From assembly GCF_006345805.1 (NCBI RefSeq), contig NW_021833025.1, positions 124,001-188,000 on the forward strand: DNA of 64,000 nt, in the 5' to 3' direction. Positions 8,626 to 62,576 of this stretch are shown in pieces (position 1 is the first letter of the stretch; each line of letters opens with the position of its first letter). Under the pieces are notes generated by a model that worked only from the letters and a program-made list of their open reading frames with translations, was not told the origin of the DNA and did no database searches. Origin of the DNA: Octopus sinensis (taxonomy: Eukaryota). A program made the position numbers and the translations under genes.

Positions 8626-8699
8626 ATAATCACTGCGTATACCCAGATCACCTCTTCTCATGCCCTGGAACATTTCAATCATCTTTCCTTTTCGGGCTC

Positions 8700-9000: not shown

Positions 9001-9059
9001 AATCTCATGTTCATTGACGGCATTTTAACTGTTTGCTCGGTCTCCAGAGATCCTCCACT

Positions 9060-15430: not shown

Positions 15431-15814
15431 GTTAAACTTTATAATTGGTCGATAAAAATAATATTTGTGATAATCAAAGGATTTAATTTTGACATCTACT
15501 AGGTCAAAAATGTAACCGGTTGCCCATGCGTAACGCGTTGCCCATGTCACATAATGCTAATTATTATTTTTTATCAATAATATTCTTTATCAAGGTCAAT
15601 AAAGATTAAACTTCATTGGTCGATCGACTTTCATATGTAATTTAACACATAATTTTATAAATATTATTTTATCAAAGAAAATTGACCTTAATATTATTTT
15701 TAATTAAACTGACCTTAAATTCATTAAGATATTTTCATGTAAGACTACCATATTTAAAATAAATTTTTAAACGTGTTTGTTGCCCGCGCTATCTAAGTTA
15801 CACCTAAGATTTTT

Positions 15815-17169: not shown

Positions 17170-17900
17170 CGAGTTCTATCAACGGCTGACAAATTCGAAC
17201 TTAATTCTTATCTAGAAGGTTACCAATACTTGGAAGTGGAGTGGCATTTAACCAGGCACCGCTGTGGGGACGACGGGCCGTCACAAAGGAGGTCAAACGA
17301 TGTTGATCAAGGGATGCGCGGAATGACTTAATACGCGATTGAAGGCGAATTTCCTTCCGAGCAAATTGTTTTTGCGGAAGGTCAGAAGTTTCATAACCAA
17401 GCGAGTGCCACTTCAGGACCGCCGATGATAACTCAGGAGGCACGTAATATTTAAAGTCAGTTGAGAGAACCGTGAGTTTCTGACATGAAGAAAGTGACGA
17501 AAGGTACGCAGGCAGTGCGACATCATTCGGGCAACGAAGTCCGAGGTCTCCGTGGCGTATAGGGAATGATGCTTGGCTCTAATCCAAAGAATCAAATTAA
17601 CATTGAATATAGATTGATCAGTGAAGATGTTTTCATGCAGAAAGCATGGTACACTTCTGATGGAGTGAAGCAATTTTGGCAGAGCAAAAAAGTTTTTGGC
17701 TAGAAACAAGCCGACAAGCACTGAGACACGCCGGGCATTTCCCGATTCAAGGGCCGCAGACGATGACTTAGTTAAGCCGGTATAAGACAAGTGAACATCC
17801 CTCTGGAAGATAAAGCATTTCCTAGGCTTCTTCCGGGTGTTATTAGTTAAACAAATAAGGCATCGAAATGATGGAGACGAATTGGTATGGGATGGATTCA
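17170..17900 (-). mobile_element. CRE-like post-RT fragment
   Basis: RRPHSGAWLNATPLPSIGNLLD, homologous to SRVWLCAFPNAPSGTLLD of the 4.1-4.9 kb ORF. Confidence 0.6.
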
Positions 17901-20420: not shown

Positions 20421-20508
20421 ATTTTAACGTGGACTGCCTCCAAAAATAGAGTTATTAGTTTACATTGTTTTGTTAAAAAATTGATTCTTTGATAAAATAC
20501 TTTAACTA

Positions 20509-22395
20509 TACCATTTCCCATACTAAATGGGATTAATACCAAACTAAGTGGGATTAGCAGAAAACTAAATGGGATTAACGTCAAACTAAGTGGGATTAGC
20601 AGAAAACTAAATGGGATTAACATCAAACTAAGTGGGAAAATGGTACAGAAGACATTTGCATAAACAGACAAGGAAGAGGACATTACGGAAAATATTCAAT
20701 GGAAAAACGGAAATTGATCATAGACACACACGATAGAGATGGAGATTGGCGCTCTTTATGCAGGTCTTTGGGAGTGAAAGAAAGGACCGCATATTATTGG
20801 ATTAAAAATAAAAAAATTGAATTACTTCCTAAAGGAGGAAAGATTTGGAGTAAAAAAAGTGAAGAAATTATATCTGCTCTATTAACTTGGATTGAATGCG
20901 ATTGCCAGATCTCACTGGTCGAATGTACTGAAAAAATTCAAGCTCAATTCAATGTTACTGTTTGTGTAAATACAGTAAAAAATTGGCTTGATGGACAATT
21001 AATTTCATTGAAATCACAATAAACATGAATACAGAGGAAAATAAAATAAAAAGAATGGAGTATTTAACACGTCTTTTGAATGCGAGATCTAAAGGAAGAA
21101 CTATAATTTGGATAGATGAGTCAAATTTTAATTTATTTTGTCGTCGTAAAGAAGGACGTTAACAAATTGGATGTCGGTCTATTGTTCTTGCACCCAGTAG
21201 CAGAGGGTCAAATTTACATTGTATAGCTGCAATGTCATCGTCACAAATATATAATTTTAAGTGCAGAAGAGGCTCATATACAGGGGAGTCCTGTAAAACA
21301 TGGTTTAGGCAACTTATTAATGAATGTGATGCATCAGGAGTTACACATCCAACATTCGTAATTGATAATGCTCCTATTCACAGTCAACTTGAGTCTGTAA
21401 TAAATCCAGGAGAAAATAGTGAATTATTAAGACTAGCGCCATATTCTTATTTAATCAACCCAATAGAACTTGCTTGGAGTTCATTCAAAGCTGAAGAATT
21501 CGTGAAAATATGGATGAAACACAACAACACAACGCACCGTGTGTCCGGTGTGCTTAATCTGCCCAGTGGAGTCCCACTCCATGTTTACTTCAAAAGCTCA
21601 GGAATTAGTCAGGAAATAATTAGTTTTTTATTATCCGGCTCAATATTATTTTGCCATTGATCAAATATCCAAAGTAAATAAAATAAAAACTTTTTTGAAT
21701 AAATGTTGAATAAAAAACTAAAATTAATTAAATAATCTAAAAAATTGTGTTCCCTGATAAACTATACCATTTCCCATACTAAATGGGATTAACACCAAAC
21801 TAAGTGGGATTATCAGAAAACTAAATGGGATCAACGTCAAACTAAGTAAAGAAGAGAATTCGTGAAAATATGGATATAATTATAAATTATAAAAAAAATG
21901 CAGAGGGACTGTCAATAACCGAATTCAGAATGAGAATCTTGGAAAGGATTGCAATTGAGGCAAAAGAAGTATTAACTCCACAAAAGTTAATGGAATTCTC
22001 GAATCATGTGGAGAGATATTACCCCTCAGTTATTCGATGTGAAGATTTAACTGACAATTCTTTTTTGTAATAAAAATTTCTTGCAAAATAGAATTTCTCA
22101 CCTGCAAAATTGGTTTTCATGACCGCAAATTTAATTTCTTGATTGGAAAATCGATTTTCCCAGTCGCAAAATTCATTTACTATTTGCAAAAATGATTTTC
22201 CTAACCGCAAACCGGATTTCTTACATGCAAAATTGCCATTCGACAATTCCCTTAGCCACCCAATTGCTTTAAATTCTTTGTTGTGTTTTATTAAATAAAT
22301 TATTTTTTTTCTAAAATTGCCATTCTTGACTGCAAATTTAATTTCCAGATTGCAAAAATGATGTTCTCAGCTGCAAAATTGACTTGTAAATGGTA
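20509..22395 (+). mobile_element. IS630/Tc1-like DNA transposon A (inactive), with subterminal 21-bp arrays
   Basis: Ends TACCATTT/AAATGGTA flanked by TA; HTH ORF 20699-21022; WIDES..DNAPIH..NPIE (D33E spacing); stops plus a 334-bp insertion. Confidence 0.85.
21514..21847. repeat. Inverted near-identical copy of 23003-23336
   Basis: Direct reverse-complement comparison: about 334 bp with few differences. Confidence 0.9.
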
Positions 22396-22397
22396 TA

Positions 22398-23085
22398 GTG
22401 TGTCGGCAATATTTCCCTGTATTCAAGAAATAAAGCCTACACAATCTTTAGACGTAATGGTTTTCATGCTATCCACAATTATTTGTTCAAGTATCCGTGT
22501 TCGATACTCTTTAATTGATAAGCCTTCTCCCTGTTGGAATAAAATTTGGTTTTTTTTCGAAGCGATGTCTCTTTTTACGTGAGCTTTTACTTTGGACCAT
22601 ACGTTTTCGATGGGGTTAAGCATTGGGCTGTACGGACCGAGACGAAGAATATGAAAATCATTAAATTCTTCCAATCGAAGAACTTCTTCGATACCACTGT
22701 GAACTGGTGCATTGTCCAACACCACAATAACTGGACCACCATGTTTAATCCGTGCTTGCCTCAAACAAATTTGCCGAAATATTGCCGACATTAACATAAA
22801 ATTTAAAAAAAAAGAATTTTTTGGTGTTAATCCCATTTAGTTTGGTATTAATCCCATATTGTTTGGTATTAATCCCATATTGTTTGGTATTAATCACATA
22901 TTGTTTGGTATTAATCCCATATTGTTTGGTATTAATCCCATATTGTTTGGTATTAATCCCATTTAGTTTGGTGTTAATCCCACTTAGTTTGACGCTAATC
23001 CCACTTAGTTTGATGTTAATCCCATTTAGTTTTCTGATAATCCCACTTAGTTTGGTGTTAATCCCATTTAGTATGGGAAATGGTA
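22398..23085 (-). mobile_element. IS630/Tc1-like transposon B, internally deleted, with a 12 x 21-bp left-end array
   Basis: VLDNAPVH..PYSPMLNPIENVWS (D35E spacing); array 22822-23075; end TACCATTTCCC plus TA. Confidence 0.82.
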
Positions 23086-23579
23086 TAGTTTATCAGGGAA
23101 CACAATTTTTTAGATTATTTAATTAATTTTAGTTTTTTATTCAACATTTATTCAAAAAAGTTTTTATTTTATTTACTTTGGATATTTGATCAATGGCAAA
23201 ATAATATTGAGCCGGATAATAAAAAACTAATTATTTCCTGACTAATTCCTGAGCTTTTGAAGTAAACATGGAGTGGGACTCCACTGGGCAGATTAAGCAC
23301 ACCGGACACACGGTGCGTTGTGTTGTTGTGTTTCATGTATAAGAGACTTAACCAAATATAAAAGCCACTTACAGTCTGTTTAAAAAAACGTGACCACTTG
23401 AAAATGTATGTTTGTTTAATTTTTGTGATTTATTTTTGAAAATTTACAGGGAATGATAAATTTAAAACCTTTCCAAACTTGTTGACTTTGACCTTGGACA
23501 CCACCCTGTTCGCCTTATACATCACTTAAATTATCTAAGATATAATGTGATATTTCTAATTTATCAACCCATTTTTCAC

Positions 23580-26800: not shown

Positions 26801-28309
26801 AACCTCAACATTGGTCACGAATGCTTGTTTCTTGTATGCATGGAGCAACTCCATTTCCTGGTCCAATAAACGGAAGATTGAGGCGAGCCTAAAAAGAGTT
26901 CCAGCACTCACGGTGCCTTGGACAAAAGGCAAGCTTTCGACTCCTACGAGCATAGAAGGCCACTTGATGGTATATGGACGATCAGATGAAGAAATGAAGA
27001 CAAGGCCCACATGACCACTACGCGTGTGCCCGGGTACTCGCGAGGAAAATCGCGCCAAAATGAGGAGTCTTTTCGTGCGTGTCGGGATCACGAAATTTTT
27101 TTCTTTCTGTCCTAATTGGAAATTGCTATTTTATGTTATCAAAAAAGTTCTGTATAATCTAAAAATAATAGATTTCAGATTTAAAAAATATTTGCTCTTT
27201 AAAAAATTAACTATAAATCTTAAAAATCTCGCACCTCCTAAATTTTTGCGCGCAGTTCCTGTATGGAACCGCTGATTTATAGGACTTACAATTCCATGGT
27301 TTTTAATAAAGTAGTCTATTGAATCTATTCTAAACTCTTTTTTTTAAGAAAACTTTTTTGACCTAATTTCTTTTCAGATTTGAACGTAGAAAACGGTTTT
27401 TGACTTTCTCCTGATTCCATTTATCTAAAATATTTGACAATTTCATTTTCAAAAGTAGGATTTAAAACTTTTAATTACACCTTGATTTAAAGGATTCCCA
27501 AACAAGCTGCTTCCCGGATTTAAAAGCGAAAAGCGTACAGCCGTAGGGACGTTTTGGATTTTTAAGGTCGAGACCCGTCTGTTCCAGAACTGAAGAGAAA
27601 CCAGCTCTTTCCAGGGCTTTACGAATTAGATTGTTAATTTCAGTGTGCCGAGAAAATCGGCTGGCACTCGTTCTACAAAACAGAGGATGGAGCCCAAGGA
27701 CGTCAACTTTAGCCCCACAACAGCGGGGTGAGGTCTGCAGACAGGGAATCCAAGGAGATTGCAGATAGCCAAACGGAGTTAATCCCTATCGAGGACAGTA
27801 TCCAAAAGCGGAGAAGGAAGTACATTAAGCCAGGAGCCTGAGTATGGCTGACAGGCGGAACGGAAACAGGCCCATCTGTGTTAATCGAAAAGCGGTTCCA
27901 AGTTAGCTGAAGATCGACGGCAAAAAATTTTGTCCCAATCCCGCTGAAAAATGACATCGGAAGGGAGTTCAGAGTTATTTTGTTTCAAAGTGAAAGGACC
28001 GAATAAATATTAGAGTCCAACAATGATTCAGTAGTTTTTTCCAGAATTTTTTGGACAAGGAGATATGATCCAGACGCCGAAGAAAGAAAGGCAGAAAGAG
28101 CCAACTGTAAAGGAGGCCCAAACCTCCGTGACTCAATATCCGGTTCACTTAATTTTTGATATCTTTTATCAAGAAAAAATTGGCAAATTACATAGTTTTC
28201 CGATGCAGAAGTGACGCCCTTGTCAAAAATTTGAATACTTACAGAATTTGGTGAATTAAATAGTTTACTGTCCTAAGGTTCCTACAAATATTTGCCGACC
28301 ACGTAGCTA

Positions 28310-28710
28310 ACCAAAGGAAGAGGAGCATTAGAATCCTCATAAGCTTAACCAGGTTCAATCTGGATCCGGAAACGTACATCTACGTCTACAAAACGTGTGT
28401 ACAGCCAGTCCTCACATATGGCTACAAGGGCTGGTACGGTACGGAGGAGAATGACTACCTTGTCGAACAGTTGGAAAAAACAAGACGTTTTGCATTGAAA
28501 CTGGCTTATGGAGTACAACTTGACGGAATGCTAGGAAGCTTGCGAGAATCCTCTGTGCCTACGATCCGGATAGTCTTGGAGAAAAGTTGTCGACACTGAC
28601 TATAATTGGGGATACGCATTAAAAGAGACACTTCGGTGCCTCGTTTAATCTCTCCGTGAACGATCTTTCCTTGTTTTCTTTCGGTTTCTGTTTTTGATCA
28701 ATAAACAACA
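28310..28710 (+). mobile_element. LINE 3' fragment of the 38.9-41.2 kb family (27.5-28.1 kb upstream may be its 5' part)
   Basis: Near-identical to 40790-41160. Confidence 0.8.
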
Positions 28711-32603: not shown

Positions 32604-33158
32604 ATGATTATAGATGTTTCTAAATATGAAGAATGCTACCAAGAATTTTTTCAGTATTATATTAATAAATATCATCAATGGAAAAAAATAAATGAAAAAA
32701 ATCACAAGAAAAAAAGAATTGTATTTACTGAGACACAAATCAATGAACTTGAAAATAGATTTAACTTCAATCAATATATTAACTTGGCGGAAAGAGAGAC
32801 TTTAGGAAGAAGATTAAATTTAACTCAAGAACAAATTAGAACATGGTTTCAAAATCGTCGATACAAATTAAAAAAAGATACAAAAAACACAAATTTTTCA
32901 TATTCACAACTTTCCACAAATCAAATAATGTCCCAAGATTATTATTCTCCTAATGTGCATATAAATAATTTTTTTGAATATTATAAAGAAAATAATGAAT
33001 GCTATTTTATACCCACACCATTAAAAGCTACCGACTTTAATCAAAAAGATGAGGCCCCACATCAAAAAATCAACATTCATACAAATCCTGGAAATGATAA
33101 AAAGACTTGGACGTCACAAGAATATGAGTATTATCCAGATTATCCAGAATTTCAATAA
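32604..33158 (+). CDS. NK-class homeobox protein
   Basis: KKKRIVFTETQINELENRF..LNLTQEQIRTWFQNRRYKLKK; Tyr54 typical of NK2/3/4 homeodomains. Confidence 0.88.
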   Translation: MIIDVSKYEECYQEFFQYYINKYHQWKKINEKNHKKKRIVFTETQINELENRFNFNQYINLAERETLGRRLNLTQEQIRTWFQNRRYKLKKDTKNTNFSYSQLSTNQIMSQDYYSPNVHINNFFEYYKENNECYFIPTPLKATDFNQKDEAPHQKINIHTNPGNDKKTWTSQEYEYYPDYPEFQ

Positions 33159-38899: not shown

Positions 38900-41180
38900 T
38901 TTCAACCAAAAATGTGAGTTATGGATGTGAAACTACGAATATGGATGGAACTGTCCTTGAAGACTTGGCCAGTAGCTTGGGTTTTTTGGTCTTTACATCG
39001 AAAGAACTGAATCATTATGCAGACAGAGGCAGGACTGATCGCTTGGGTCTCTTTCTATGCTCGGCATCAATTAGTCCTTTATGTTACATACCGAGGTTGG
39101 AAGCGGACATTGGCTCTGACCACGTGCCGCAAACGATGTTGATAAAGATGACTATGAATGTTACGGAGGACTTGTTCATTGGTTACAACCTCGTGAATAT
39201 GAACTGGAGTTTATTCGAATCATATATGCGGGATTCTCTTCGAAATGTCGTGTTCCAGCCTCTGAGAGGCAGAGATGATATTGACAATCTCGATGATCAC
39301 CTTAGATCGTCAATCATAAAATTCCTGGATGTTTATGCATTAAAAAATGTATGGAAACCTAAAGGAACGCAAAAGCGGATGAATTCGAAACTTGTCACTT
39401 TGATCAGAACGAAAGGTACTCTGGAAAATCGCAGGAGAAGATGTCGGGTTGAGTCAATTAAATGCCGCCTGAAATTGGAGATCGACAAGATAAAATCTAC
39501 TATTGCAAAAATGGCCAAGACTGAGGTCGAAAATAAATGGAGGTCTGAATGCAGAAAACTGGATAAGCGAAACCCTAATTTCTGGAAAGCATATCAACGC
39601 CTTACCAGAAATGATGCCAAAGGATTTGAAATTTCACTAAAAGAACCAGACGGGAAATATATCTCCTCTGATCGTATCCCGGAAGTACTCAAGAACCAAC
39701 TCAGTCAGGTTCAAGAGGTCGAATCTACCGTTCCACGAGGGACTTATGACCGAATTGTGAAGAAGCTTGGCTCTTCGCAATTATCGGAGGGACCATTATG
39801 TGGGGCGATAACACAGGAAGAGGTTGAAAAGGCAATTGCTGGGTTGAAGAACAAGGCGCCTGGCTTCGACTACATCCCTCAGATGTTGTTAAAGAAGGCC
39901 CCTGAAATCTTGATACGAGCACTGACTATTGTTTCACGCCAGCTGGACGTTCGGACACCTTCCATCGGCGTGGAAGCATAAGATTGTTCGAATGATTCCA
40001 AAATCTGGTAAATCGACACTGCTAGCAGAGAACTACCGGCCAATTAGCCTCATTTGTGCTTTCTCTAAGACAATGGAAAAGATTGTCTTTAACAGACTCT
40101 CTTGTCATATAGAATCACAAAATTTGCTTTTACCCGAACAATGGGGATTTCGTGAAGGAAGATCCACAGGGGACTGCCTCAGGGAGTTAGAGCACCAATT
40201 ATCCCGTGCTGACAGAAATAAAGCATGGCTAACTGTGGTGTGTCTAGACCTGGCCAAAGCCTTCGATAGCGTGTGGCACCTGGGCCTACTCTCCAGAGTC
40301 CATGACACCGGAGCCGGGATAAAGACCTATCGATGGCTGGAGAGGTTCTTGTCCGCTGTGGAAACCGCCTATCGGGGTGTGTGGAACTTAGAAGGGGAGT
40401 CCCGCAGGGATCTATCTTGAGTCCACTTCTGTTCAACCTCTTCTTGGCGGACATTCCTCTGCCGTCGATACGTACTGGGAAGCTCGTCATCTATGCTGAC
40501 GATATCCTGGTAATGGATACCTCGAAAAGGATATCGCAGTTTTGGAGACGACTTAAATCATACATTGCAACGCTAAAGATGTGGACTATAGAGAAGGGTT
40601 TGACCTTAGCACCGGAGAAGAGCACCATTTCATGGTTGTGGAGAGGGAGTCGCTGTGCGGAGTCGTGTGCATATGCGATGAGTAGTTATGTGATGGATCT
40701 CTCGAAAAGCAAAAATCTTTATTACCTGGGAGCAACCATCAACTGTCGTGGCTCGTACGCAGATCATATAGCAAATCAGAGAAAGAAAAGTGTGAAGATC
40801 CTCAAAAGCTTAACCAGGTTCCATCTGGATCCGGAAACGTACATCTACGTCTACAAAACGTGTGTACAGCCAGTCCTCACATATGGCTACAAGGGCTGGT
40901 ACGGTACGGAGGAGAGTGACTACCTTGTCGAACAGTTGGAAAAAACAAGAAGTTTTGCATTGAAACTGGCTTATGGAGTACAACTTGACGGAAGGCTAGA
41001 AAGCTTGCGAGAATCCTCTGTGCCTACGATCCGGATGGTCTTGGAGAATTGTTGTCAACTATGACTACAATTGGGGATACGCATGGAAAGAGACACGTGC
41101 CTTGTTTTTATCTCCCCGTTAATGATTTCTTCCTTGTTTTTCTTTTCGGTCAATAAATACTATTCTATTCTATATATTGA
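38900..41180 (+). mobile_element. 5'-truncated APE-RT LINE, frameshifted
   Basis: IGSDHVP (APE end), NYRPISL, QWGFR, LDLAKAFDSVWH, GVPQGSILSP, YADD. Confidence 0.9.
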
Positions 41181-41449: not shown

Positions 41450-43262
41450 AAAGGAAAACTGGCATGGTTTCGGGCTGTATGTGGACGACTGCCTGCTCGA
41501 TCTCTCTATGGAAAATTGCACGGTGGAAAGGACGGCCAAGATCCTGTCTACTATCATTTTGCAAGCTGATAAATTATTTATACCTGTCGCTTCATACAAG
41601 AAGTTCAATCCAAGATTATCATCACAAATCCTATCACTTATCAAAGAACGGGATGCCCTGAAGAAAAACAAGTCCAATGACTCATATCATACTATACGTT
41701 CGTTGAATATCAAAATTTCTGAACTGATCCGGACTAATAACGGACTCAAGTGGAGTCGTCTCGTTGGTCGATTATGTCACAGAAATTCCTGCGCCACCTT
41801 CTGGAAAACGCTAAGAAGGATCAATTGCCTTATCGGCGAGGAGGACGGAGGAACTGAGGCCGTTGCCCACAATTCCTCGGAACCCGCTCGCAAACTTGCA
41901 AACAAGATTATGAAGTACTACGTATCGATCAGCCATAAAGACTTCTCTCGCACTCCACATTTTGAACGGCTCGGACCGCGACCAGAACCGTATTCCACCT
42001 TCTTCACACCGGATGATGTTGACAAGGCTATTAAATCCCTACGTCCCACCCGTGCTTGTGGCCCCGACGGGATTTGTGCTGTTCACCTCAAACACCTGGG
42101 ACCCCGGGCACGGACCGTACTATCAAGACTATATAACGACTCCATCAACTTACGTACAATACCTAATATATGGAAAAACTCCCTAATTACGCCAATTCTA
42201 AAGTCTGGGAAACCAAATGGCCCCCTCTTCATACCGCCCAATCTCAATAACTTGTATCTTATCGAAAGTACTGGAAAAGCTCGTACTAGCGCGAATCTCT
42301 CCTGTTCTACAACTGCCAGAATTCCAGCACGGTTTTAGACCAGACCGTTCTACAACGACCCACTTGTGGGCCCGTATTGACAATACTATTTCAAGATCAA
42401 GGCTACTGCCCAATGGTGTCCCACAAGGCTCCCCTTTATTTCCTCTCCTTTTTAACCTATTTCTACATGACCTACCCATTACTAAATCGCGCAAGAGGTA
42501 AATCTCCTTCTGTGGCTGTCGCAATGGTCCAGTCACACCTCAACCGTGTATGTGATTGGCTATCTGCAAACATGTTGTGTGTGTCTGCATCTAAATCCCA
42601 ATTCACCCTCTTTACTACTGATAGAAGATTCAAGAATGGACTGGAACTATTCATTGGAGACAATCCTATTCCCTCTTCGCGTACCCAGAAGATTTTTGGC
42701 GTGGTTTTCGACTCCTTAATGACGTTCTCAAGTCACGTAGAGGAGGCCCTAGCTAAAGGTCTTCGGAAGTGGAACGTCTTGAAAGCTCTGTTAAAGAAGA
42801 GTCCCTTCCCCCTGAAAGATTGTGTCAGCAAGGTCTACCAACAAGTGATTGCCCCGACGGTTGAGTATGCCTGCTCAGCCTGGAGGTTTGCAATTGCATG
42901 TTCGAAAGCGGAACGTTTGAACTCACTCAGAAGGAAGATTATGCTCCACACTGACACCTCAGTTGGCAGCCTTGCTTCCGAGGAGGCGACGCAGAAGAAT
43001 GGACAGGGTTTCCTACGTTTCTGCAAGGAACTGGGAAACTCACTCAAGGAAAAGGTGGCCCATGCAGAGGAATTTCGGTCGGTTATAAAGAAATGCATTC
43101 CAATTGAGTTCTACTGCAGAAGGAAGAGAAGGCGTTTTCGGATTACGGTCGGGTCATCAGAAGATCATGTAAGGAGAGTACGGCTGTTGTTGGAGGCAGG
43201 GATCACCTAATTAGTTAGTTCTGACCTATCTTTCTCGGTGATCTTGGAGTTAATAAATAAGA
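41450..43262 (+). mobile_element. Jockey-like LINE fragment with internal deletions
   Basis: GPDGI..WKNSLITPI, SYRPISI, FQHGFR, GVPQGSPLFP; YADD region deleted. Confidence 0.82.
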
Positions 43263-43300
43263 GATGTCAAAACTGGTATCCGACATTCCTAGACCTTAGT

Positions 43301-44028
43301 TTGAATGAATGAATGAATTTTTTTATTAAAACGGAAAAGCCGAAAAAAGAGAGAGAAAGTTAATGAGACAACGTATGCCTCTTCTCCGTTGTTTCCCTCT
43401 TTTTTTTAATTCGAGATTCGAGAGGAAAAGGCTCTCTCAAGAACACTTCCAACCGTTTCCGTCGCGTCTTCCATCTCTTGAGGGATGAGTTGGTCCAGCT
43501 TGAGTCCATTTGCCAATTTGATGGCATATCGTCTCGTCTTTTCGATCTTAGCGATAATGCCATCCCTCTCAGCAGTAGGGTACCATCCCTCGAACCCGTA
43601 GGTAAGCAATGGTTCGACGCACGTTTTATAAACATATAAAAACGTTTCCGGACAAAGGTGGAAGTGAATTATGCTCCTGAGAATTTAAGCGCATTTCCTT
43701 CTCCTCGAGTCGATGTATCTGAAGTAAGAACCCTTGGATCCAACTTCAACTCCAAGGTATTTCAGGTTCTCCGTTACTGTAAACCCATAGAGGTTTCTCG
43801 GCGGTTTTCGTTTAGCTCCCTGTTTTCCAATCCAAGTGGCGATGCACTTTTCTTTTGCGAGCGTCAGTCCTTTTGATATGCACCACTCTTCCACTCTTGT
43901 CACGTATCCTTTTAATTTCTTCCACGAGATGTCTTTTCTCCACGAAGCATCCGTTATTAGTATGTCGTCCGCGTAGACCGAGCCTTGAGGTACCCCTCTT
44001 TTGAGATCGACAGCTTTCGACAAATTCT
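43301..44028 (-). mobile_element. LINE family X copy 3 (3' ~730 bp, in-frame internal deletion), fused to a 28S fragment
   Basis: Highly similar to 45880-46673; (TTCA)n tail; GVPQGSV joined directly to YADD. Confidence 0.9.
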
Positions 44029-44845
44029 CCGTGCCAGTTCTACTTTGGTTGTTCATTGTCCTACCACTCAATGCTCAACTATCACTTACGCAGCAATCAA
44101 ACAAACAGCAGTAAAGATTCAACCCATAGAGCCAATCCTTCTACCGAAGATACAGATCTAGTTTGCCAACTTCCCTTACCAGCGTTTATCTATTGACTAG
44201 AGGCTGCTAATCTTGGAGACTTGCTGCGGTTATTGGTACGGCCCAAGTGACTGTTAAACTGTAACAGGCGTTTTATGAAACGTCAGGTGTACACTGGACA
44301 CAGCAAAAACTGCAATGCTTTGCGGATATGATCGTAGTGATCAACATCTTCTCTTTCGCTGGCTAAACCATTTCAAGAGAAACCGACACTTTAGAAGAAA
44401 AGATAACTCTTCCCAGAACACCTGGGACGTCCTAGAACGCCGTCCTAGACTGTTACAACAGCGTCACCGCATAAACAGCCTTCTTAGGTTCGGGAATATT
44501 AACCCTATTCCCTTTTGTACACAGGCTACACTAGCCATTTCAAATGATTTGATAACGTGCTTAGGACCGACTAACTCATGTACAATTTATGTTCACATGA
44601 AACCCTTCTCAACATAGGCCCTCAAAGTTCTCATTTGAGTAATTGCTACTACCACCAAGATCTGCACTAGCGAACAGCTCTATCAGCATTCACATGCTTG
44701 GCTTCAGTGCTACCGCCACGTCTCTCCTACTCGTCGTAGCCTATCTTTTCTCATTAGCCAAACCCAGTCAAACTGCTACAACGGCCTAGTATAGGTCAAA
44801 CGCTACAGCGCTATCCATTTTCAAGGCCAGTTAATTCGACAGGCT
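44028..44845 (-). rRNA. Orphan 28S rRNA internal fragment (~820 nt), pseudogene
   Basis: Conserved LSU strings on the minus strand: GAAAATGGATAGCGCT, GCAGATCTTGGTGGTAGTAGCAA, GGTTAATATTCCCGAACC, AAGGATTGGCTCT, AGAACTGGCACGGA. Confidence 0.92.
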
Positions 44846-44956
44846 AGTTATTATGTGACATGGGCGGCTGGATACGCATGGGCAACCGGTTACATTTTTT
44901 GACCTTGTAATGTCAATTATTAATCATTGAACAACTTGAAAGAATAATGCATTTTA

Positions 44957-46673
44957 TAAGATTCGTACCGTGAAAATAGAGATAAATGATGTCGCAAAAA
45001 AACATTCAGACCTTGCTTGGAAGAGTCAATGCTCGAAACTGAATAAGAAAAACCCTCATTTTTGGAAGGTTTTCAACAGACTGAGTAATATGGAGAACAA
45101 AGGAGAAGAGATCCGACTAAAAACAACTGAAGGAATAGATATCCCGCTCGATGAAGTTCCCTCACATCTGCGAAGTCAACTGGCAAAAGTTCAAGAGGTG
45201 GATCCGATCGACATGGTTCCGAAAGAAGTTATATGTGAGGCTCAGAGAAGTCTAAGAGCTAATTTGAGTCATACGGGACCACTGTGCAGAGACATAACGT
45301 TGGAAGAAACGTATGCCGCAATTATGAGCTGCAAGAATAATGCACCCGGCCATGACTACATTCCAATTCTGTATTCAAACATGCTCCAAATATTCTCCTA
45401 CGATACTTGACCGCACTATACAATGCAAGCTGGAGACTTGGATACGTACCGGACTCTTGGAAAAAGTCAATCGTACGTATGATTCCAAAGCCTGGAAAAA
45501 TAAAGGACCATGCAGAGAACTATAGGCCGATAAGCCTAATATGCTCCGTCTCTAAAATTATGGAACGGATTGTCTTCACAAGACTTTCGAACTTCGTAGA
45601 GGAATCAGGTGCACTTGCAGTAGAGCAGTGGGGATTCCGACGAAAAAGATCCTGTGGTGATTGTTTCGGAGAACTCGAGAAAGTCATCTCGCTTAGTCTT
45701 GCTAATAATACAGCGACTATTGCTATCTGCCTCGATGTCTCAAAAGCTTTTGACAGCGTATGGCACCTGGGCCTCTTGGAAAGTGTCGCCAAGAGCAAAC
45801 CCGGGTCTAAAACGGTCAATTGGCTGAAGAGCTATTTATCAATGAGAAGGTCATACATACGATGCGGAAACCGTTTGTCGGAATCTGTCGATCTCAAAAG
45901 AGGGGTACCTCAAGGCTCGGTCTTGAGCCCCCTGCTTTTTAATATTTACGTTGCTGATATTCCAAAACCGAAAGATCCTACCAGTCGTCTCATGATCTAC
46001 GCGGACGACATATTAATAACGGATGCTTCGTGGAGAAAAGACATCTCGTGGAGGAAGTTAAAAGGATACGTGACAAGAGTGGAAGAATGGTGCATATCAA
46101 AAGGACTGTCGCTTGCAAAAGAAAAGTGCACCGCCACTTGGATTGCAAAACAAGGAGCAAAACGAAAACCGCCGAGAAACCTCTATGGGTTTACAGTAAC
46201 GGAGAACCTGAAATACCTTGGGGTTGAAGTTGGATCCAAGGGTTCTTACTTCAGATACATCGACTCGAGGAGAAGGAAATGCGCTCAAATTCTCAGGAGC
46301 ATAATTCACTTCCACCTTTCCCCGGAAACGTTTTTATATGTTTATAAAACGTGCGTCGAACCATTGCTTACCTACGGGGTCGAGGGATGGTATCCTACTG
46401 CTGAAAGGGATGGCATTATCGCTAAGCTCGAAAAGACGAGGCGATATGCCATCAAATTGGCAAATGGACTCCAGTTGGACCAACCCATCCCTCAAGTGAT
46501 GGAAGACGCGACGGAAACGGTTGGAAGTGTTCTTGAGAGAGCCTTTTCTTCTCGAATTAAATTTTAAAAAAAAAAAAAAAGAGGGAAACAACGAAGAAGA
46601 GGCATACGTTGTCTCATTAACTTTCTCCCTCTTTTTTCGGCTTTTCCGTTAATAAAAATTCATTCATTCATTC
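44957..46673 (+). mobile_element. LINE family X copy 1 (5'-truncated)
   Basis: RT ORF 45407-46567; (TTCA)n tail; 13-bp TSD ATAATGCATTTTA at 44944 and 46674; 1-bp deletion near 45368. Confidence 0.94.
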
Positions 46674-46749
46674 ATAATGCATTTTAACAAAAAAAATTAA
46701 AATTAATCATTTTTTTTAATTGCTCAGTACTATTGAAAACAAAATCGAT

Positions 46750-47410
46750 TGAATTAATTAGTATGACCCTAGGATAGCGTGTGAATTTCCGCGGACAATT
46801 GCACACGAAATCCTCTGGAAGAGCCACGACGTCTCCCGCGGATCACCTGTTTTTTTGGTGATTAGACCACCCAATCTTCGAATGAACGAAAAACTCTCTG
46901 ATCCAAAGACTCCGGAAGTCTCCACAGCGATCGGCTGGAAAAGATATCTGTCTGCCAGGAAAGAGTATTTCTTTTTCTTCAACTCTTCAGAACGTTTTGC
47001 AGCAGAGCCAGGAAAGGATGCCGAACTTCCGAATGAAGAAGGTCCAAACGTGTCAGGGCAGGTAAAATCCCAAACAAGTGCTTTCCCTCTCGTGTACGGG
47101 TAGATAGTTACGCCATCTGGGCGTTTGCCATCCCCTCTATCGAGACCAGCTGGTTCGAGTTGAGAGTGGAATCCGGCAGCGTCCATGGCCCTTTTGTGAT
47201 GTCATTGGCGGCGGAATGTCGGGGAAAACGACCGGCGCTACGAGTGCAAGAAAGTGGGTGCCTTCCCAATGGACCAATCCTCTTTCCACATTTGCAGGGG
47301 TGTGGGGTGCACATCGGTAAGCCGAGACGTAGACATAGGCCGATCCTAATGGTATCGTCGTCCAGTTTACAGCCGGTAGACGCAATAGGACACGCTATCC
47401 TAGGGTCATC
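46750..47410 (-). mobile_element. CRE-like CCHC plus RLE 3' fragment
   Basis: CKCG..HPLSC..RH; KRPDGVT..WDFTC..PIAVETSG..QRISCAIVRGN. Confidence 0.85.
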
Positions 47411-47612: not shown

Positions 47613-50600
47613 CAGTCCGACCCCCAAATGGGGCACCAAGTGCCCCAAAATGCGGGGGTGCCCCAAAAACAGGGGTTTGTTATTTTTTTAAAAATTAAAC
47701 CATTAATAAACATCAAAAAACATTTTTACTAAAATATTCAGTTATTTTCTTTTTATTTGTAGACTTTTGTCTGATATTGAATGAATGAATGAATGAATTT
47801 TTTATTAACGGAAAAGCCGAAAAAAGAGGGAGAAAGTTAATGAGACAACGTATGCCTCTTCTTCGTTGTTTCCCTCTTTTTTTTTTTTTTTTTTTTAATA
47901 TTTAATTCGAGAGGAAAAGGCTCTCTCAAAAACACTTCCAACCGTTTCCGTCGCGTCTTCCATCACTTGAGGGATGGGTTGGTCCAACTGGAGTCCATTT
48001 GCCAATTTGATGGCATATCGCCTCGTCTTTTCGAGCTTAGCGATAATGCCATCCCTTTCAGCAGTAGGATACCATCCCTCGAACCCGTAGGTAAGCAATG
48101 GTTCGACGCACGTTTTATAAACATATAAAAACGTTTCCGGGGAAAGGTGGAAGTGAATTATGCTCCTGAGAATTTGAGCGCATTTCCTCTCCTCGAGTCG
48201 ATGTATCTGAAGTAAGAACCCTTGGATCCAACTTCAACCCCAAGGTATTTCAGGTTCTCCGTTACTGTAAACCCATAGAGGTTTCTCGGCGGTTTTCGTT
48301 TTGCTCCCTGTTTTGCAATCCAAGTGGCGGTGCACTTTTCTTTTGCAAGCGTCAGTCCTTTTGATATGCACCATTCTTCCACTCTTGTCACGTATCCTTT
48401 TAACTTCCTCCACGAGATGTCTTTTCTCCACGAAGCATCCGTTATTAATATGTCGTCCGCGTAGATCATGAGACGACTGGTAGGATCTTTCGGTTTTGGA
48501 ATATCAGCAACGTAAATATCTCAAGACCGAGCCTTGAGGTACCCCTCTTTTGAGATCGACAGATTCCGACAAACGGTTTCCGCATCGTATGTATGACCTT
48601 CTCATTGATAAATAGCTCTTCAGCCAATTGACCGTTTTAGACCCGGGTTTGCTCTTGGCGACACTTTCCAAGAGGCCCAGGTGCCATACGCTGTCAAAAG
48701 CTTTTGAGACATCGAGGCAGATAGCAATAGTCGCTGTATTATTAGCAAGACTAAGCGAGATGACTTTCTCGAGTTCTCCGAAACAATCACCACAGGATCT
48801 TTTTCGTCGGAATCCCCACTGCTCTACTGCAAGTGCACCTGATTCCTCTACGAAGTTCGAAAGTCTTGTGAAGACAATCCGTTCCATAATTTTAGAGACG
48901 GAGCATATTAGGCTTATCGGCCTATAGTTCTCTGCATGGTCCTTTATTTTTCCAGGCTTTGGAATCATACGTACGATTGACTTTTTCCAAGAGTCCGGTA
49001 CGTATCCAAGTCTCCAGCTTGCATTGTATAGTGCGGTCAAGTATCGTAGGAGAATATTTGGAGCATGTTTGAATACAGAAATTGGAATGTAGTCATGGCC
49101 GGGTGCATTATTCTTGCAGCTCATAATTGCGGCATACGTTTCTTCCAACGTTATGTCTCTGCACAGTGGTCCCGTATGACTCAAATTAGCTCTTAGACTT
49201 CTCTGAGCCTCACATATAACTTCTTTCGGAACCATGTCGATCGGATCCACCTCTTGAACTTTTGCCAGTTGACTTCGCAGATGTGAGGGAACTTCATCGA
49301 GCGGGATATCTATTCCTTCAGTTGTTTTTAGTCGGATCTCTTCTCCTTTGTTCTCCATATTACTCAGTCTGTTGAAAACCTTCCAAAAATGAGGGTTTTT
49401 CTTATTCAGTTTCGAGCATTGACTCTTCCAAGCAAGGTCTGAATGTTTTTTTGCGACATCATTTATCTCTATTTTCACGGTACGAATCTTATCCCGAAGA
49501 CGAATACGATCTATGGGGTCACTGCATCGTCTTAGCTTCTTTTCAAGGTTTCCCTTCCATTTTATAAGTTTTCCCAAAGATTCGTCAATCCGGGTTTTTC
49601 TGTTAGTATTTGACATGATGTATTTCCTGATTGAAGATTTTCGGAGAAAGTCCAGTATAGCTTCTCTGAGAATTTTATCAAGTTTTTCAATTTGTATATT
49701 CGAAGAGATGTTTTGTATTGGATACGGTGTCAAATGCTTTTTCATTGATACCTCAAGGTCCGACCAGATTGTCCGAGACGTATCGTATCCGATAAACAGA
49801 TCTTCGCATATCGTAGATGATGTTCGCATACACAAGGATTGAGGTAGGTGATCACTACCAATGTTTATCTCAATCCTTGGTATGCTGCATTGATGAACAA
49901 GATCTGCCGATACGAGGAAAACTCCAATACAATCCTCTCCATAACAAGAGAAGTGGTTTGGTTCTCGTGAGGTCAAAACACTAAAACCGCAGTTCTCCGA
50001 TAATCTGAGGAGTATATTACCGTCCGAATTTGTGTTGGCACATCCGTACGATGTGTGTTTTGCGTTAAGGTCTCCTATTAGAATTCCTCTATCATTGTTC
50101 TGGAAAAATTCTTCAATAAGATTTTGATAATTCTTCATTGCTTTGGAGTACATAGCTCCGACAGATATCCATCCAAGGGATGTTAGTAGTTTCAATGTAA
50201 TCAGTTCGCACAAATTTTGTTCGACGATTTTCAAGTCCCTCACCATCAGATTGTCTTTATAATATATGGATGTCCCAGTGCCAGCCACTGCGTCAGGTCG
50301 CCATGGGATATCAATCGACTGAAAACCATGGATTTTATGATGTTGATTTCCCTTAAGCTTCGTTTCATTAACAACCAATATGTCCATGTTTACCGAGCTA
50401 ACCAAGTAGGTTAGCTCCGTAGCCCGTCCATGTTTACTGTCTGATATTGTTCGTCAATTTCAGCCGAAAATCAAAAAATCTCGGAGCATACTTGTGTCAA
50501 CATTAGAAATTTTTTCTTCTAAATTGTTAAGCAGATCTTTGTTTTTGCTACGACATTTTCACTATTTTCGGTTTCTGAATATGTATCATAAACATTATTG

Positions 50601-57749: not shown

Positions 57750-57900
57750 AAAACTGGTCATTGGCAGATAGCCAGAGTATTTCCTCTGACTATGGCTATG
57801 GATATTCTTTTGGTTAAATACCGGTGCTCACACGGGTCGCGGGTAACCCTTTCCATTAGTGAGCCAATCCGCTGGAGCAGGCTCCGAGTAGAAGACCCGA
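57750..57900 (-). mobile_element. CRE-like extreme 3' fragment
   Basis: RIGSLMERVTRDPCEHRYLTKRISIAIVRGNTLAI. Confidence 0.7.
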
Positions 57901-58741
57901 AAATTGAAATTTGGTTGTATATATAATTACATCTTGACTAAAAATGATTATATTCCCCCTGAATTATTTTATATTTCCAAATTTAATTATCTAAATTGGC
58001 CATTAATCCCAGCAGGAATCTGAATTAAAATTTGTACATTTTAAAATTAAAAGCAATTAGTAGTTAGTTATTTAGATCAAATGTTAAAATAACATCTATA
58101 ATGTAAGTTTGTTTAATAAAATTAAAAAATTATTATTCCTTTTTTTTAAAAATTATTATTATTCCAAATACAATTTTATATTAAAAAAAGTATAAAAAAG
58201 TAAAAATAGCATTTTATCAGTAAAATCGTTCTACTGATAAGCATGTCATTAAAGAATATTCAACGTGTTGATTATGATTAATCATGTCATTACTAAATTC
58301 GAAATAAGATAAAATAGTTTAATTTGGCACTATTAAAGGATTCAGTTTAGATTTTTGGTATATTCTGAGGATACATCAAATTGTTGACAAACTAGGTTAA
58401 ATCAATGAGACAGAAATAATACTTTATTGATGGGGATTTGATACTAAGATCAAATTCTTTACTAAAACTGCTTTATTTATATTAATCTTTATGGAAACTC
58501 TTGTTGTTTCCCTTGAGACTTAATTAAGTAATTAAAACTTCTGGTTCACAATCTGTGAGGCTGGGAGGGCGTCCTAAACTGCGTAGTCTTAAACAAACTT
58601 CCTCCTTTTCTAACTTAACTTTTGTAAACAAATTTATATTTTATAAATTAATATACGATTTAATATTTAAATTATCAATAACTTGCGGTTGTCCTGGCGA
58701 TGCGTGCCATATATAAAATGTCTAATTAATACGAATTATCA

Positions 58742-61700
58742 ATGCGTGGTAGCTTCAGGAAATCGTTAAATCCAGGTAATTAATAAAAAAATTCAAGTTT
58801 AATTCAGAGACAGAAAGAACTGTTTTGTCAAACACTGGGACTCAACAGTGCACGCCATTTTGCGTAAAAGTCTACTTTTCTATTCTAGACCAACCTAATT
58901 ATTACCTCAAAGTATACGTGGTATTCATTTTTACCAATAAATATGTATGAACAATTCTCGAGGGTTTCCAACGCTTATTTTTTAGTATTAATGATTTTAC
59001 AAGTTAATTAAATATTAAAATTCAGTTAATTCCGGGAATATCGTCATTATCTCCACTTACAACAATATTTCCCCTATTTATTGTGATTAGTCTGTCTGCT
59101 ATAAAAGATATATATGACGATTACGTGAGGCATAAGAACGATGACGAAGTCAATAACCGACATTGTTTAATTTTCCGTGATGGAGAATATTCCCCTGTAA
59201 AGTGGAGAGATGTGGTAGTGGGTGATATTCTCAGACTCTCAAGTGAAGAGAAAGTGCCAGTATTTTTTCACTATCTTCATTTCCAGGCTGACATTGTGTT
59301 ACTTAGTACCAGCGACGACGGAATTTGTCTTGTCGAAACAGCGGAACTTGATGGGTTGCCATTAATTAACAAATTTGTGCAGAGAAACAAACTTGAAGAC
59401 TCGAAATGCTCTTCCTTCCACTGTTCAGAAGTTCGCTTCTTCTAATTTGGATGATTACCTTCTAAAAGTGTCATCAGAACTGCCAAATAAAATACTTGAC
59501 AAATACGAAGGAACTCTTCAAATGCAAGACGATTCCATATTTTCATTAAGCAACGAAAATGTGGTTCTTCGTGGTTGCGTAATTCGGAACACTGCTAATG
59601 TAGTTGGAATGGTTATTTTCACTGGATGTGACACAAAAATTATGATGAACTCTGGAAAACTCCGTTTAAAGCGGACACATCTTGATATGTACGTCAATAC
59701 AGTCATCATGCAGGTTTCTTTTAATTGCTATTGGCAGATACTCATTTTCCTCGTTACTTCCGTTGTTGTCCTTATCATTGGGCAGGGGATTTGGGAGAAA
59801 ATTTTTGGTGTCGATTTGAGATTGTATCTTCCCTGGGCGGAGTATCTTCCGTTGAATGTCGATAGTGCAATCACAGTAAAGTCTATTTTATCTTTCTTCT
59901 CTTTTGTTATTATTATGAATGCCATAATCCCGATTTCTCTCTATGTGAGGTCTGTTTTAATATCCATTTTCGTAGTGTTGAATTCATTCGTTTTTGGCAG
60001 TCACTTTTTATTAACTGGGACTTGAGAATGTGTGATTCTAACACGGGGACTTTCGCCAAAGCCCGAAGCACTAACCTTATTGAGGAATTGGGGCAGATTC
60101 AGTATATTTTCAGCGACAAGACCGGCACCCTAACTCAAGTTTGGCTATTTGGAAAATATTTTAAGAATTTGATGAAATTTAGACAATGTTCTATTAAAGG
60201 TGTCAAATATATGGAATTTCAGGTTTTTCTTTGCATTTACCATGGTAGGAAAAGGAACTGCGGGATCAAATTCTGGGAAATGATGATACAACTAGGCTTT
60301 TTATGGAAATACTGTCAATCTGTCATACTGTCATGGTTGGGAACGTTAATTACGGTATTGAATTTATTGTGTTTTTAGATAGTACTCCTAATTTTCAGGC
60401 ACAGTCGCCTGACGAGGGAGCTCTAGTTGAGGCAGCATGCTATTATGGATTCATATTTAAGGTTTTAGCACAAAAACAACTTTAGAGTCGAAAGAATGGT
60501 ATAATTGAAATCGAAGTCAACGGGACTTCACTTTATTTCGAAATATTGGCAATCCTTGACTTTGACAATTTCCGAAAAAGAATGTCTGTTGTAGTCCGTA
60601 GAAATGGGAAAATCACGTTATTCTCGAAAGGAGCCGACACTACGATATTTCAGGTTCTATCCTCATCCAATTCCGAGTCACTTCGTAGCACTACAGAACA
60701 ACACTTAAATGTAATAGTTAATGTAATTTGGAGGACTTTGCTTGTTCTGGACTCAGGACTCTTTGCTTTGCCTATAAGGAGATTAAAATAGAGGATTGGA
60801 ATCGATGGTTTAGTGACTATTCTGCTGCCAGTTTGTCTTTGACTGACAGATCTGGGATGATAAATCACTGTATCATGGAACTAGAGAAGGACCTGATTCT
60901 TTTGGGTGCCACGGGAATCGAGGACAGATTACAAGACAACGTGGCCGATACTATTTCGTCAATTACTGCTGCAAAAATTAGAATTTGGGTACTCACGGGA
61001 GACAAATTGGGTTGCTAACCTACTCTTTACAACTCAGAGACCGCTGTAAATATCGGGCATTCTTGCAGTTTGTTAACAAATGATATGTACGGAGTCTTCA
61101 TGCTGGACAGTGAATTTAGGGATGAGGTTAAATCAAAACTGGATGGTTTTATAAACAACATCCATCACTCTCTAATGAAAATGGATATTGATTATTACCA
61201 ATTCCGAGATGCATATAACACTTTTTCGACGTGTTTTGACGGATTCCTAGGTTTTTCCCTGGTAATCACAGGCCAGGCATTGGTTTGCCCAGATTAAACT
61301 GATTCTTTTTAGGATATTGCTCTCAGTAATTATGCCCAACTATTTGTTGAATTGACCAGTTGTTGCAAAACAGTGATTTGCTGCAGAGTCACGCCCCTAC
61401 AAAAGTCACAAGTAGTCTGCTTGATCAAAAAACACAAGAAAGCGATAACACTTTCTATCGGAGATGGGGCCAATGATGTCAGCATGATCAAAGGTGTTGC
61501 GAGAGTTGAATTTACTTTAGCTGCCGATATTGGAGTTGGTATATCTGGTAAGGAAGGAAGACAGGCAGTGTTAGCTTCAGATTATTCTATCAGCCAATTC
61601 TGCTTTCTCAAGTATCTCCTCTTGTATCATGGACGTCTCTCATATTTTCGGATGTCAGCTTTTTTGTCATATTTTTTCTACAAGAGTTTCAGTTTTGCAT

Positions 61701-62576
61701 TTGCCCAGTTCATTTATGCATTTTTTTCCGCCTTCAGTGCTCAAGTCTGGAGGTTTTGTGATTTTGTAGATCTTCTATCATGTTATTTTTATGGCAACCT
61801 ACAATTTGGTTTATACTTCGGTTCCCGTGCTTGTCATGGCTATTCTGGACAAGGTATATTGTGCTCAATTATCTTTCTGGATGTTCTTAACCCAGAAATG
61901 GCCACTGATCCAAAATTGTACGATTCAGGTCTAAGAAATCGGCTCTTTAACAAAAAAATATTTTTTCTGTCGGCATTTGAGGGCTGTGTGACTTCACTGG
62001 TTATCACTCTCTTCACATACCTTGCCTTCAATGACGGGGTCGATTTAAGCGGGAAAACAATAGATGATCTCTACACAGTTCAACACGTGGGAATGACTTT
62101 ACTCACTTTCGTGGTCACATTTAGAGTTTTTTTGGATATTTGATTATAGTGTGCTTTGTACATGAGTTCTTGGACTTTTTTTCATCATTCTACAATATGG
62201 CTGTCAATTCTAGCTTATTTCGTGGTCGTTCTTTTCCTCAGTGGGGATATTGTAAAGAGTACCGCTATTGGAGCAGCCTTCACAGTCTTGCAATCTCCTA
62301 TTTTTTGGTTTTTGCTACCATTGGTAATGACTTGTCTGCTTATGCCTGTTGCTGCTTATAAGTATCTTATTTTTTCTATTTGTGAAAGGGCTGTTCATTC
62401 TCACTTCCATCCTTCATATGCACGCGAGTTAGTGATGAATCCTAAAAGGAAGATACCGAAGACGACATGGAGTCGGCGTCGCGGATATGCCTTCTCTCAG
62501 GAAGAAGTATTGGCAGTTTTGGTTATATTCTTAGACTGCTATTGGAAAAAAATATATTAAGAATTCGGCTTGCTAG
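58742..62576 (+). CDS. P4-type phospholipid-transporting ATPase (ATP8B-like), many short introns
   Basis: [91 protein letters not shown]. Confidence 0.93.

Follow-up and report, generated by a model that had tools for sequence, protein, structure and literature searches.

The window analyzed here, by which we mean the whole stretch of 64,000 nucleotides (VCDQ01008158.1:124001-188000, in the Octopus sinensis assembly GCA_006345805.1), contains a block in which three modules lie head to tail on the minus strand. Reading along that strand these are the 3′ part of a long interspersed nuclear element (LINE) that we call TE-P, which is truncated at its 5′ side and runs to its exact 3′ end; a fragment of 28S ribosomal RNA (rRNA) corresponding approximately to 1270-2320; three filler bases, GAA; and the 3′ part of a second LINE (LINE-A), again 5′-truncated and running to its repeat tail. 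The coordinates of these and of the surrounding features are collected in Table 1. An earlier note on this DNA had described a unit at 43296-44850. The fusion of 28S and LINE that it reported is upheld, while the extent it gave is too small, since the TE-P 3′ terminus adjoins the 5′ end of the 28S. We tentatively read the window as holding a retrocopy of a composite transcript of ribosomal DNA (rDNA) that already carried both TE-P and LINE-A, an account that we hold to be possible but short of probable. The weight we give to this and to the other readings below, part of which we assign to none of them, is rough reasoning and does not come from a formal model.

The 28S module is 826 nt of eukaryotic 28S (minus strand, from 44853 to 44028), with its ends set against real 28S from metagenomes. 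When this region was searched alone, Rfam returned LSU_rRNA_eukarya on the minus strand at 44009-44653 (398 bits, E = 1e-106). The reference 28S sequences were 29 JGI metagenome contigs fetched with one 28S-specific 30-mer; they come from distant eukaryotes, with 70-89% identity in the conserved cores, and serve as references and not as relatives. The fragment starts with TAATAACTAGCCTGTCGAAT, the counterpart of which in real 28S is TAACAACTCACCTGCCGAAT, and ends with GAACTGGCACGGA, where real 28S runs on as CACGGGGAATCCGAC. Its composition is AT-rich and its expansion segments are very short, yet in the Rfam alignments its helices have been kept through changes on both sides of the pairs. It appears to be a fast-evolving parasite's own type of rRNA, and not decayed octopus rRNA. 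A search for the source rRNA by way of spurious open reading frames (ORFs) in rDNA gave no candidates.

The likely owner of this DNA is indicated by a gene for a P4-type phospholipid-transporting ATPase (P4-ATPase) on the plus strand at 59083-62560. It is interrupted by six GT-AG introns of 24, 26, 26, 27, 27 and 28 nt (59260-59286, 59355-59382, 59714-59737, 59950-59975, 60139-60165 and 60223-60248), and the frame is continuous once all six are removed. Its best relatives come from unrelated animals, with 46-48% identity over nearly the full query, and no octopus orthologue is present among the 120 best matches listed. The window overall has approximately 36% GC and many transposon fragments. 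Dicyema japonicum is a resident of the renal sac of O. sinensis, and its genome, with 36.7% GC and 49% repeats, contains LINEs in many copies and has introns of 38 bp on average (PMC6736024). Because of the tiny introns, the GC content and the lack of an octopus orthologue for a conserved gene, the window is very probably DNA of a dicyemid parasite in the octopus assembly, and this would explain the AT-rich and compact 28S. A horizontal transfer of foreign rRNA into the octopus, which might have been suggested by that AT-rich, compact 28S with its conserved helices, was ruled out for the same reasons (introns of 24-28 nt in the P4-ATPase gene and no octopus orthologue of it), the whole window being non-octopus.

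The 28S and LINE-A modules are both on the minus strand in one orientation. At their junction the filler GAA sits between 28S ending in CACGGA and LINE beginning with TTTGTCG. There is no overlap, so that the CGGA microhomology claimed by the earlier note is not borne out. Note that with a 3-nt filler an ordinary 5′-truncated insertion would look identical to a template switch. The ORF that spans the junction is not on record. The further copies of the junction for which the earlier note had suggested a search were found neither in JGI metagenome contigs nor as a second copy in 103 kb of the genome, which includes ~39 kb from two other contigs of the assembly, VCDQ01013128.1 (L001) and VCDQ01012147.1 (L002).

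The fused LINE-A part (43319-44024) has 95% identity to three sister copies. It differs from the sister consensus by substitution at 36 of 714 aligned positions (5.0%); of 27 substitutions in the coding part 11 are synonymous and 16 non-synonymous, and there is one premature stop codon. An in-frame deletion of 75 bp lies at 43975-43977 with TCT at both edges, in agreement with the internal deletion at TCT microhomology noticed earlier. Other descriptions in the earlier note also stand: about 820 nt of 28S (826 nt when measured against real 28S) is joined in the same orientation to a 5′-truncated LINE, and the LINE ends in (TTCA)n, here four units at 43302-43318. The (TTCA)n tail closes all four of the LINE-A copies. 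No 28S resumes after the tail, as had also been claimed: Rfam found none at E <= 1 over 19 kb or at E <= 10 over 250 nt, and neither BLAST against real 28S nor shuffle-controlled alignment found any.

These details bear on whether the block is an artefact of assembly, in which an rDNA read was wrongly joined to a LINE read or a long read was itself chimeric. That the contig was built from long reads of a contaminant could invite such an error. Yet the LINE part, with indels of its own, is approximately 5% removed from the other copies, so that the join is no collapse of identical repeats; in their fine structure the two junctions look biological, and the block was later entered by LINE-A insertions whose duplications are still intact. 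We regard an artefact as very improbable.

At its other end the 28S starts no more than 3 nt from the precise point where TE-P terminates on its 3′ side, on the same strand, and the two share a 3-nt overlap (TAA). The unit of 28S and LINE-A is flanked on its 5′ side by the exact TE-P 3′ end, and on its 3′ side by the 3′ region of a further LINE (LINE-C) with no 28S. The position of the TE-P terminus is known independently from a second copy of its last 66 bp, which we call TE-X. A match to the C-terminal ORF of TE-P (47186 to 46758) lies at 15239-15310, approximately 180 nt upstream of that second TE-X. The copy next to the 28S is truncated at about 47395 and is split by a young LINE-A (copy 2), and its coding part matches a larger relative on the minus strand at 2577-6627 in tblastn searches. 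TE-X was also considered as diverged 28S, for which its score fell below those of shuffled sequences, and as a small structured RNA, for which the z-scores were -0.15 and -0.33; both ideas were rejected.

The reverse transcriptase (RT) of TE-P is found in ORF 4994-5719 (RVT_1 in Pfam). Downstream of it there follow, in order, C-x-C...H...C, R..RH, PD, D and K..KY, read by eye in ORFs 4994-5719, 4109-4909 and 2577-3095 and in 47395-46758; in the same reading by eye the RG.W motif was not seen. Where R2-type elements lie in rRNA genes, they do so in the sense orientation. Their usual residence is the rRNA genes, and CCHC, R..RH, PD, D/E and K..KY are the motif names of the R2 restriction-like endonuclease (PMC4838377). 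From these motifs TE-P would be an R2-like LINE of the R2 type. Pfam and PDB sequence searches gave no match to its C-terminal domain, and an AlphaFold model of the C-terminus was unusable (mean predicted local distance difference test, pLDDT, 39.7). There are two copies of the TE-P subfamily: one abuts 28S in sense, and the other, with the same terminus, abuts AT-rich DNA that is not rDNA. No 28S was found upstream of TE-P. From the one 3′ end that abuts 28S in sense, the TE-P family might have rDNA as a target. The 28S position concerned is outside those named for R2, R8 and R9 (PMC4838377); with a single junction as its basis and the second copy lying outside rDNA, we take a new insertion position to be a lead and not a finding.

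Other pieces of TE-P-related sequence occur in the window. Members of the family lie at 2577-6627 (-), 46687-47395 (-) and 15239-15555 (+), with weaker pieces at 10522-10827, 27495-28104, 57761-57904 and 17192-17596, and a hAT-like fragment (3238-4065) is contained in the large relative. Just upstream of the 5′ end of TE-P, at 47640-47675, a G/C-rich unit of 18 bp (GTGCCCCAAAAACAGGGG) is present twice within AT-rich DNA; it has no match in Rfam.

The earlier note had explained the fusion by a switch of the RT from LINE RNA to rRNA. Extended to three modules, this becomes template jumping within one target-primed reverse transcription of LINE-A, in which approximately 700 nt of LINE-A RNA would be copied, a few untemplated bases added, 28S then copied from ~2320 to ~1270, and a second jump made onto the 3′ end of TE-P RNA, of which approximately 800 nt would be copied. 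The single orientation, the 3-nt filler at one junction and the 3-nt overlap (TAA) at the other would all follow from this; the second junction coincides with the 3′ end of the acceptor, which is what one would predict of end-to-end jumping, and there is no rDNA outside the unit. It has precedents in primates (bioRxiv 10.1101/2025.02.02.635956) and in Magnaporthe (PMC2104539). For a two-part chimera, insertion no more than 3 nt away from the TE-P terminus would be required; the three-part version avoids this. Against this, two jumps are needed, there is no target-site duplication, the claimed CGGA microhomology fails, and the 826-nt 28S part exceeds every primate example (50-482 nt). Moreover the third template would be a rare RNA of a class that normally resides in 28S genes, a coincidence here but something to be expected if TE-P had inserted in 28S. 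Taking both sides we think template jumping unlikely.

The duplications made by LINE-A can be seen in other copies of the family. The full-length copy 3 (47768..50447 with its duplications), used as the family reference, has a 10-bp duplication (ATATCAGACA), and the 5′-truncated copy 2 has an 11-bp target-site duplication (AATGCATTTTA) that can be read directly. Copy 2 is nested in the 3′ UTR (untranslated region) of TE-P, and is a later insertion outside the composite unit. The three sister copies differ from one another by 0.1-0.8%, which indicates that the family was recently active. All four copies have unrelated flanks, so that LINE-A is not site-specific and does not have the rDNA specificity of R1/R2-type elements; with the absence of 28S after the tail, this bears out the earlier view that the LINE is not targeted to rDNA. 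LINE-A is a very small element with a single ORF (2.65 kb, with apurinic/apyrimidinic endonuclease (APE) and RT and a (TTCA)n tail), and three pieces derived from it lie within 7 kb. At the 5′ junction of copy 3 there are 10 extra bases (GTAAACATGG) that repeat internal LINE sequence.

By contrast, no target-site duplication of at least 9 bp was found for the fused unit at any candidate boundary. The boundaries examined were those of 28S plus LINE-A, of TE-P plus 28S plus LINE-A, and of a unit reaching up to the 18S fragment described below, and the comparisons were also made with LINE-C or a further element (LINE-B) taken out as later insertions. A resemblance seen by eye in the two flanks (ACTAA...CTAGGA with a 10-nt indel) is about what chance would give and was rejected. 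The 5-bp repeat AACTA that the earlier note took to flank the unit is not a target-site duplication, because its upstream copy (44845-44849) falls within the homology to 28S (TAATAACTAGCCTG in the window, TAACAACTCACCTG in real 28S).

A second rDNA-derived fragment lies approximately 9.5 kb upstream on the same strand. It comprises 18S from ~950 to its end and internal transcribed spacer (ITS) 1, after which come some 45 nt of 5.8S, the last part of ITS2 and the stretch of 28S from 1 to ~345, with no 28S found past its 3′ end. It lacks 16 nt of a universally conserved stretch of 18S and most of the 5.8S, and from such deletions in universally conserved stretches it is a pseudogene. The presence of ITS means that it originated from rDNA or a primary transcript, and not from mature rRNA. 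Dicyemid 18S amplicons (PMC12953835) end just upstream of the well-preserved 18S and were usable for the decayed extension only; alignment of the extension to ~55815 with such an amplicon gave p = 0.017. The fragment is flanked by a direct repeat of 11/13 nt, TTTAGGGAAAA(A)TC (55820-55807 and 54292-54280); the chance of a shared 11-mer is 1.5%, from random pairs of 150-nt windows of this sequence. The repeat could be a target-site duplication left when this fragment inserted separately. The fragment is followed by an AT-rich stretch of 55 nt.

With two rDNA fragments 9.5 kb apart, on one strand and in gene order, one of them with ITS, it could be proposed that the whole is decay in place. The locus would then be an orphon or a relic of an array, once extending from 18S to beyond 28S position 2320, that was hit separately by TE-P, LINE-A and other transposons, with deletions having removed 28S 345-1270 and everything past 2320. 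The interval between the fragments is indeed a patchwork of transposon pieces with two young LINE-A insertions that have their own duplications; rRNA fragments are absent from ~39 kb of the two other contigs of the assembly that share the LINE families, and the lack of a duplication around the unit would be natural. However, the breakpoints must then fall precisely where the intact LINE-A tail stops and at the TE-P 5′ end, both elements would be in sense only by chance, and the direct repeat of the second fragment suggests a separate insertion. We consider decay in place to be another unlikely explanation, about as doubtful as template jumping.

In the retrocopy reading, the sequence of events would have begun with insertion of TE-P in sense into the 28S gene of a dicyemid rDNA unit, followed ~1 kb downstream in the same unit by insertion of a 5′-truncated LINE-A with three filler bases at its 5′ junction. 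The primary transcript of this invaded unit would have carried the LINE-A 3′ UTR and tail. The LINE-A machinery would then have recognized the LINE-A 3′ end and primed reverse transcription at the present locus, copying back through the LINE-A part and the 28S into TE-P, where it stopped. The junction of 28S and LINE would on this scheme be an ordinary insertion junction, and not a template switch. Inferred in this scheme are a source unit in the rDNA, transcription of that unit and one event of reverse transcription; observed are the three modules with their orientation, the exact TE-P terminus and LINE-A tail, outer edges with no rDNA past them, and a second fragment with ITS.

What speaks for the retrocopy is that the three modules share strand and order, and that the 28S starts within 3 nt of a TE-P terminus set independently by the copy at 15489-15555. 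The motifs of TE-P appear to be those of the R2 type, a class that typically sits in rRNA genes. The unit stops exactly where its LINE-A tail, which is intact, comes to an end, and 28S is absent past either outer edge. Clean outer edges are a prediction of a single reverse-transcription event, and two precisely placed deletions would otherwise be needed. LINE-A is active and makes ordinary insertions with 10-11 bp duplications. The ITS-containing fragment with its direct repeat hints that primary transcripts or rDNA have inserted here before. One event of reverse transcription would thus account for the shared orientation, for the two inner junctions and for the clean edges on either side.

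Other points weigh against it. There is no target-site duplication, be it with the 3′ flank that adjoins the tail or with the sequence on the far side of LINE-C or of LINE-B, and at approximately 5% divergence a 10-bp duplication should remain visible. A source rDNA unit with either element is itself a deduction. The endonuclease class of TE-P is suggested by motifs read by eye, and the only other copy of the subfamily is outside rDNA and lends no support to 28S targeting. That LINE-A would initiate internally when given a read-through transcript is an assumption taken over from other repeat-tailed LINEs.

Of the template-switch idea, the RNA-templated anatomy is retained, i.e. one orientation, 5′ truncation, an end at the LINE tail and no 28S after it; the specific switch from LINE RNA to rRNA is one candidate mechanism among others. 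Insertion of both elements followed by retrocopying of the composite fits at least as well, and the switch mechanism is not established because the duplication is missing, the 3′ end of a putative R2-type element precedes the 28S, and the nearby fragment carries ITS.

Table 1. Positions and character of the composite block and of the features around it, in window coordinates unless another contig is named.
Feature	Position	Strand	Description and evidence
LINE-B	38906-41174	+	5′-truncated, related LINE family; ends in a CTATT-like repeat
LINE-C	41451..43296	+	5′-truncated; RT motifs in ORFs; 3′ region meets LINE-A tail, tail to tail
LINE-A tail	43302..43318	-	(TTCA)4 on element strand; Tandem Repeats Finder (TGAA)4.2 on + strand
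LINE-A 3′ part	43319..44024	-	5′-truncated within RT domain, plus 3′ UTR; Pfam RVT_1; BLAST and alignment to sister copies
Filler GAA, 3 nt	44025..44027	-	matches neither LINE (AACCG) nor real 28S (CACGGGG)
28S rRNA fragment	44028..44853	-	Rfam LSU model ~1270-2320; BLAST to 29 real 28S contigs
TE-P 3′ end (3′ UTR)	44851..44945	-	terminal 66 bp (TE-X) present again at 15489-15555, both boundaries shared
LINE-A copy 2	44957-46675	+	5′-truncated, young; with duplications 44946..46686; 98.4% identity to copy 3
TE-P coding part	46687..47395	-	5′-truncated; CCHC region, putative restriction-like endonuclease region, start of 3′ UTR; tblastn
LINE-A copy 3	47778-50426	-	full-length 2.65 kb, APE + RT; with duplications 47768..50447
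rDNA-derived fragment 2	~55815 to 54350	-	Rfam and sequence; same strand as 28S piece, in gene order
LINE-A copy on L001	9961-12624 of VCDQ01013128.1		

LINE-C has its coding end near 43060-43210, judging by weak homology to LINE-A and LINE-B, with 43296 as an approximate 3′ limit; no other copies were found in the window or in L001 and L002, and its ORFs are absent from the protein collection searched. The LINE-B copy at 38906-41174 has a 15-bp duplication (ATATTGAATTTCAAC), and further LINE-B pieces are found at 28304-28685 and on L001 at 6929-9225. At 20504-23336 two fragments of DDE_3 (Tc1/mariner-type) transposase are flanked by short repeats that resemble a satellite and contain inverted blocks; this repeat is present on L001 at 4783-5129 as well. 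Two apparent host genes of the parasite lie among the transposons, on the plus strand: one is an intron-free homeodomain ORF at 32604-33158 (Homeodomain in Pfam, E = 1.5e-18), the other a fragment of COX15/CtaA at 12765-13148 (E = 4e-28).

L001 and L002 share the LINE families of the window, and ORFs on them are in protein databases as the O. sinensis proteins LOC115229389 and LOC115228320. The closest LINE-A protein in the databases is filed as O. sinensis, and a 304-amino acid ORF of the window (16209-17123) has an entry in NCBI/UniRef. At least three contigs of the O. sinensis reference (VCDQ01008158.1, VCDQ01013128.1 and VCDQ01012147.1) appear to be parasite DNA or to share its LINE families. 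Such contamination is relevant to comparisons of cephalopod transposons, rRNA and gene content, and this practical point may outweigh the gain for mobile-element biology. That gain is modest, as chimeras of rRNA and LINEs are known, and what would be added is their extension to a dicyemid and to a small LINE that is not L1.

The retrocopy reading, if correct, would mean that a LINE fragment inside an rDNA unit can carry rRNA out of it, and that a template switch is not always needed; composite retroposons derived from rRNA, i.e. precursors of SINEs (short interspersed nuclear elements), could then arise without one. The earlier note had proposed that the unit could seed an rRNA-derived SINE, and the 103 kb of this genome and the JGI metagenome contigs searched gave no second copy of it. 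A more general proposal is that dicyemid rDNA harbors an undescribed R2-type element at a new 28S position, near the conserved sequence GTAACAACTCACC, approximately one third of the way along 28S, and that transcripts of invaded units ending in a LINE 3′ end are retrocopied elsewhere. We offer this as speculative, and would rate it as rather doubtful.

Several known systems resemble what is seen here in part. rDNA orphons are, like this locus, partial rDNA including spacer that lies outside the array with deletions, but the 28S piece here has a transposon end at each of its boundaries and not an arbitrary breakpoint. The second fragment has ITS1 and remnants of 5.8S and ITS2, and it has a flanking direct repeat too. 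With R2 and the other R-elements (PMC4838377) TE-P shares an RT followed by CCHC and apparent PD-(D/E)XK-type motifs, and a 3′ end that is followed by 28S in sense. It differs in that its other copy is outside rDNA and that there is no 28S upstream of it, and LINE-A is of the APE type and is not site-specific.

In SINE-like trans-mobilization and in 5′ transduction, foreign RNA is mobilized by way of a LINE 3′ end. This is similar to our retrocopy reading, where an RNA ending in a LINE 3′ UTR and tail would be copied together with its upstream part, whereas the template proposed here is a transcript by RNA polymerase I of an rDNA unit with two insertions. We know of no described case of such a transcript serving as a template in this way.

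The MGL LINE of Magnaporthe has given rise to tripartite chimeric retrogenes by double template jumps (PMC2104539). As here, their three modules derive from RNA, follow one another head to tail with a common orientation, and close with the 3′ end of the LINE. Those chimeras are described as flanked by duplications, and their middle or 5′ parts come from abundant cellular RNAs; in the window, by contrast, the 5′ module is a LINE, apparently of the R2 type, that ends just at the point where a target in 28S would start, and a physical insertion would fit this too.

The closest parallel is provided by the chimeras of 28S and LINE-1 in primates, of which 18 are described, 83% of them in sense (bioRxiv 10.1101/2025.02.02.635956). 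In both cases a copy of a cellular RNA lies 5′ of a 5′-truncated LINE, in the same orientation, and the whole ends in the LINE tail. Judged by the features of template-switch retrocopies (U6/L1 and 28S/L1), the unit here has their orientation, LINE tail and abrupt junction, without a duplication of the length usual for the family; sampled chimeric loci in primates have duplications of 7-15 bp, with 50-482 nt of 28S in the chimeras (bioRxiv 10.1101/2025.02.02.635956). Against these stand 826 nt of 28S with no duplication, a small APE-type LINE with (TTCA)n in what is probably a dicyemid, and a third module upstream. Chimeras of rRNA and LINEs are thus already known, and even if a template switch were accepted the present one would not be of a new kind. 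SINEs derived from 28S are also cited in the study of the primate chimeras (bioRxiv 10.1101/2025.02.02.635956).

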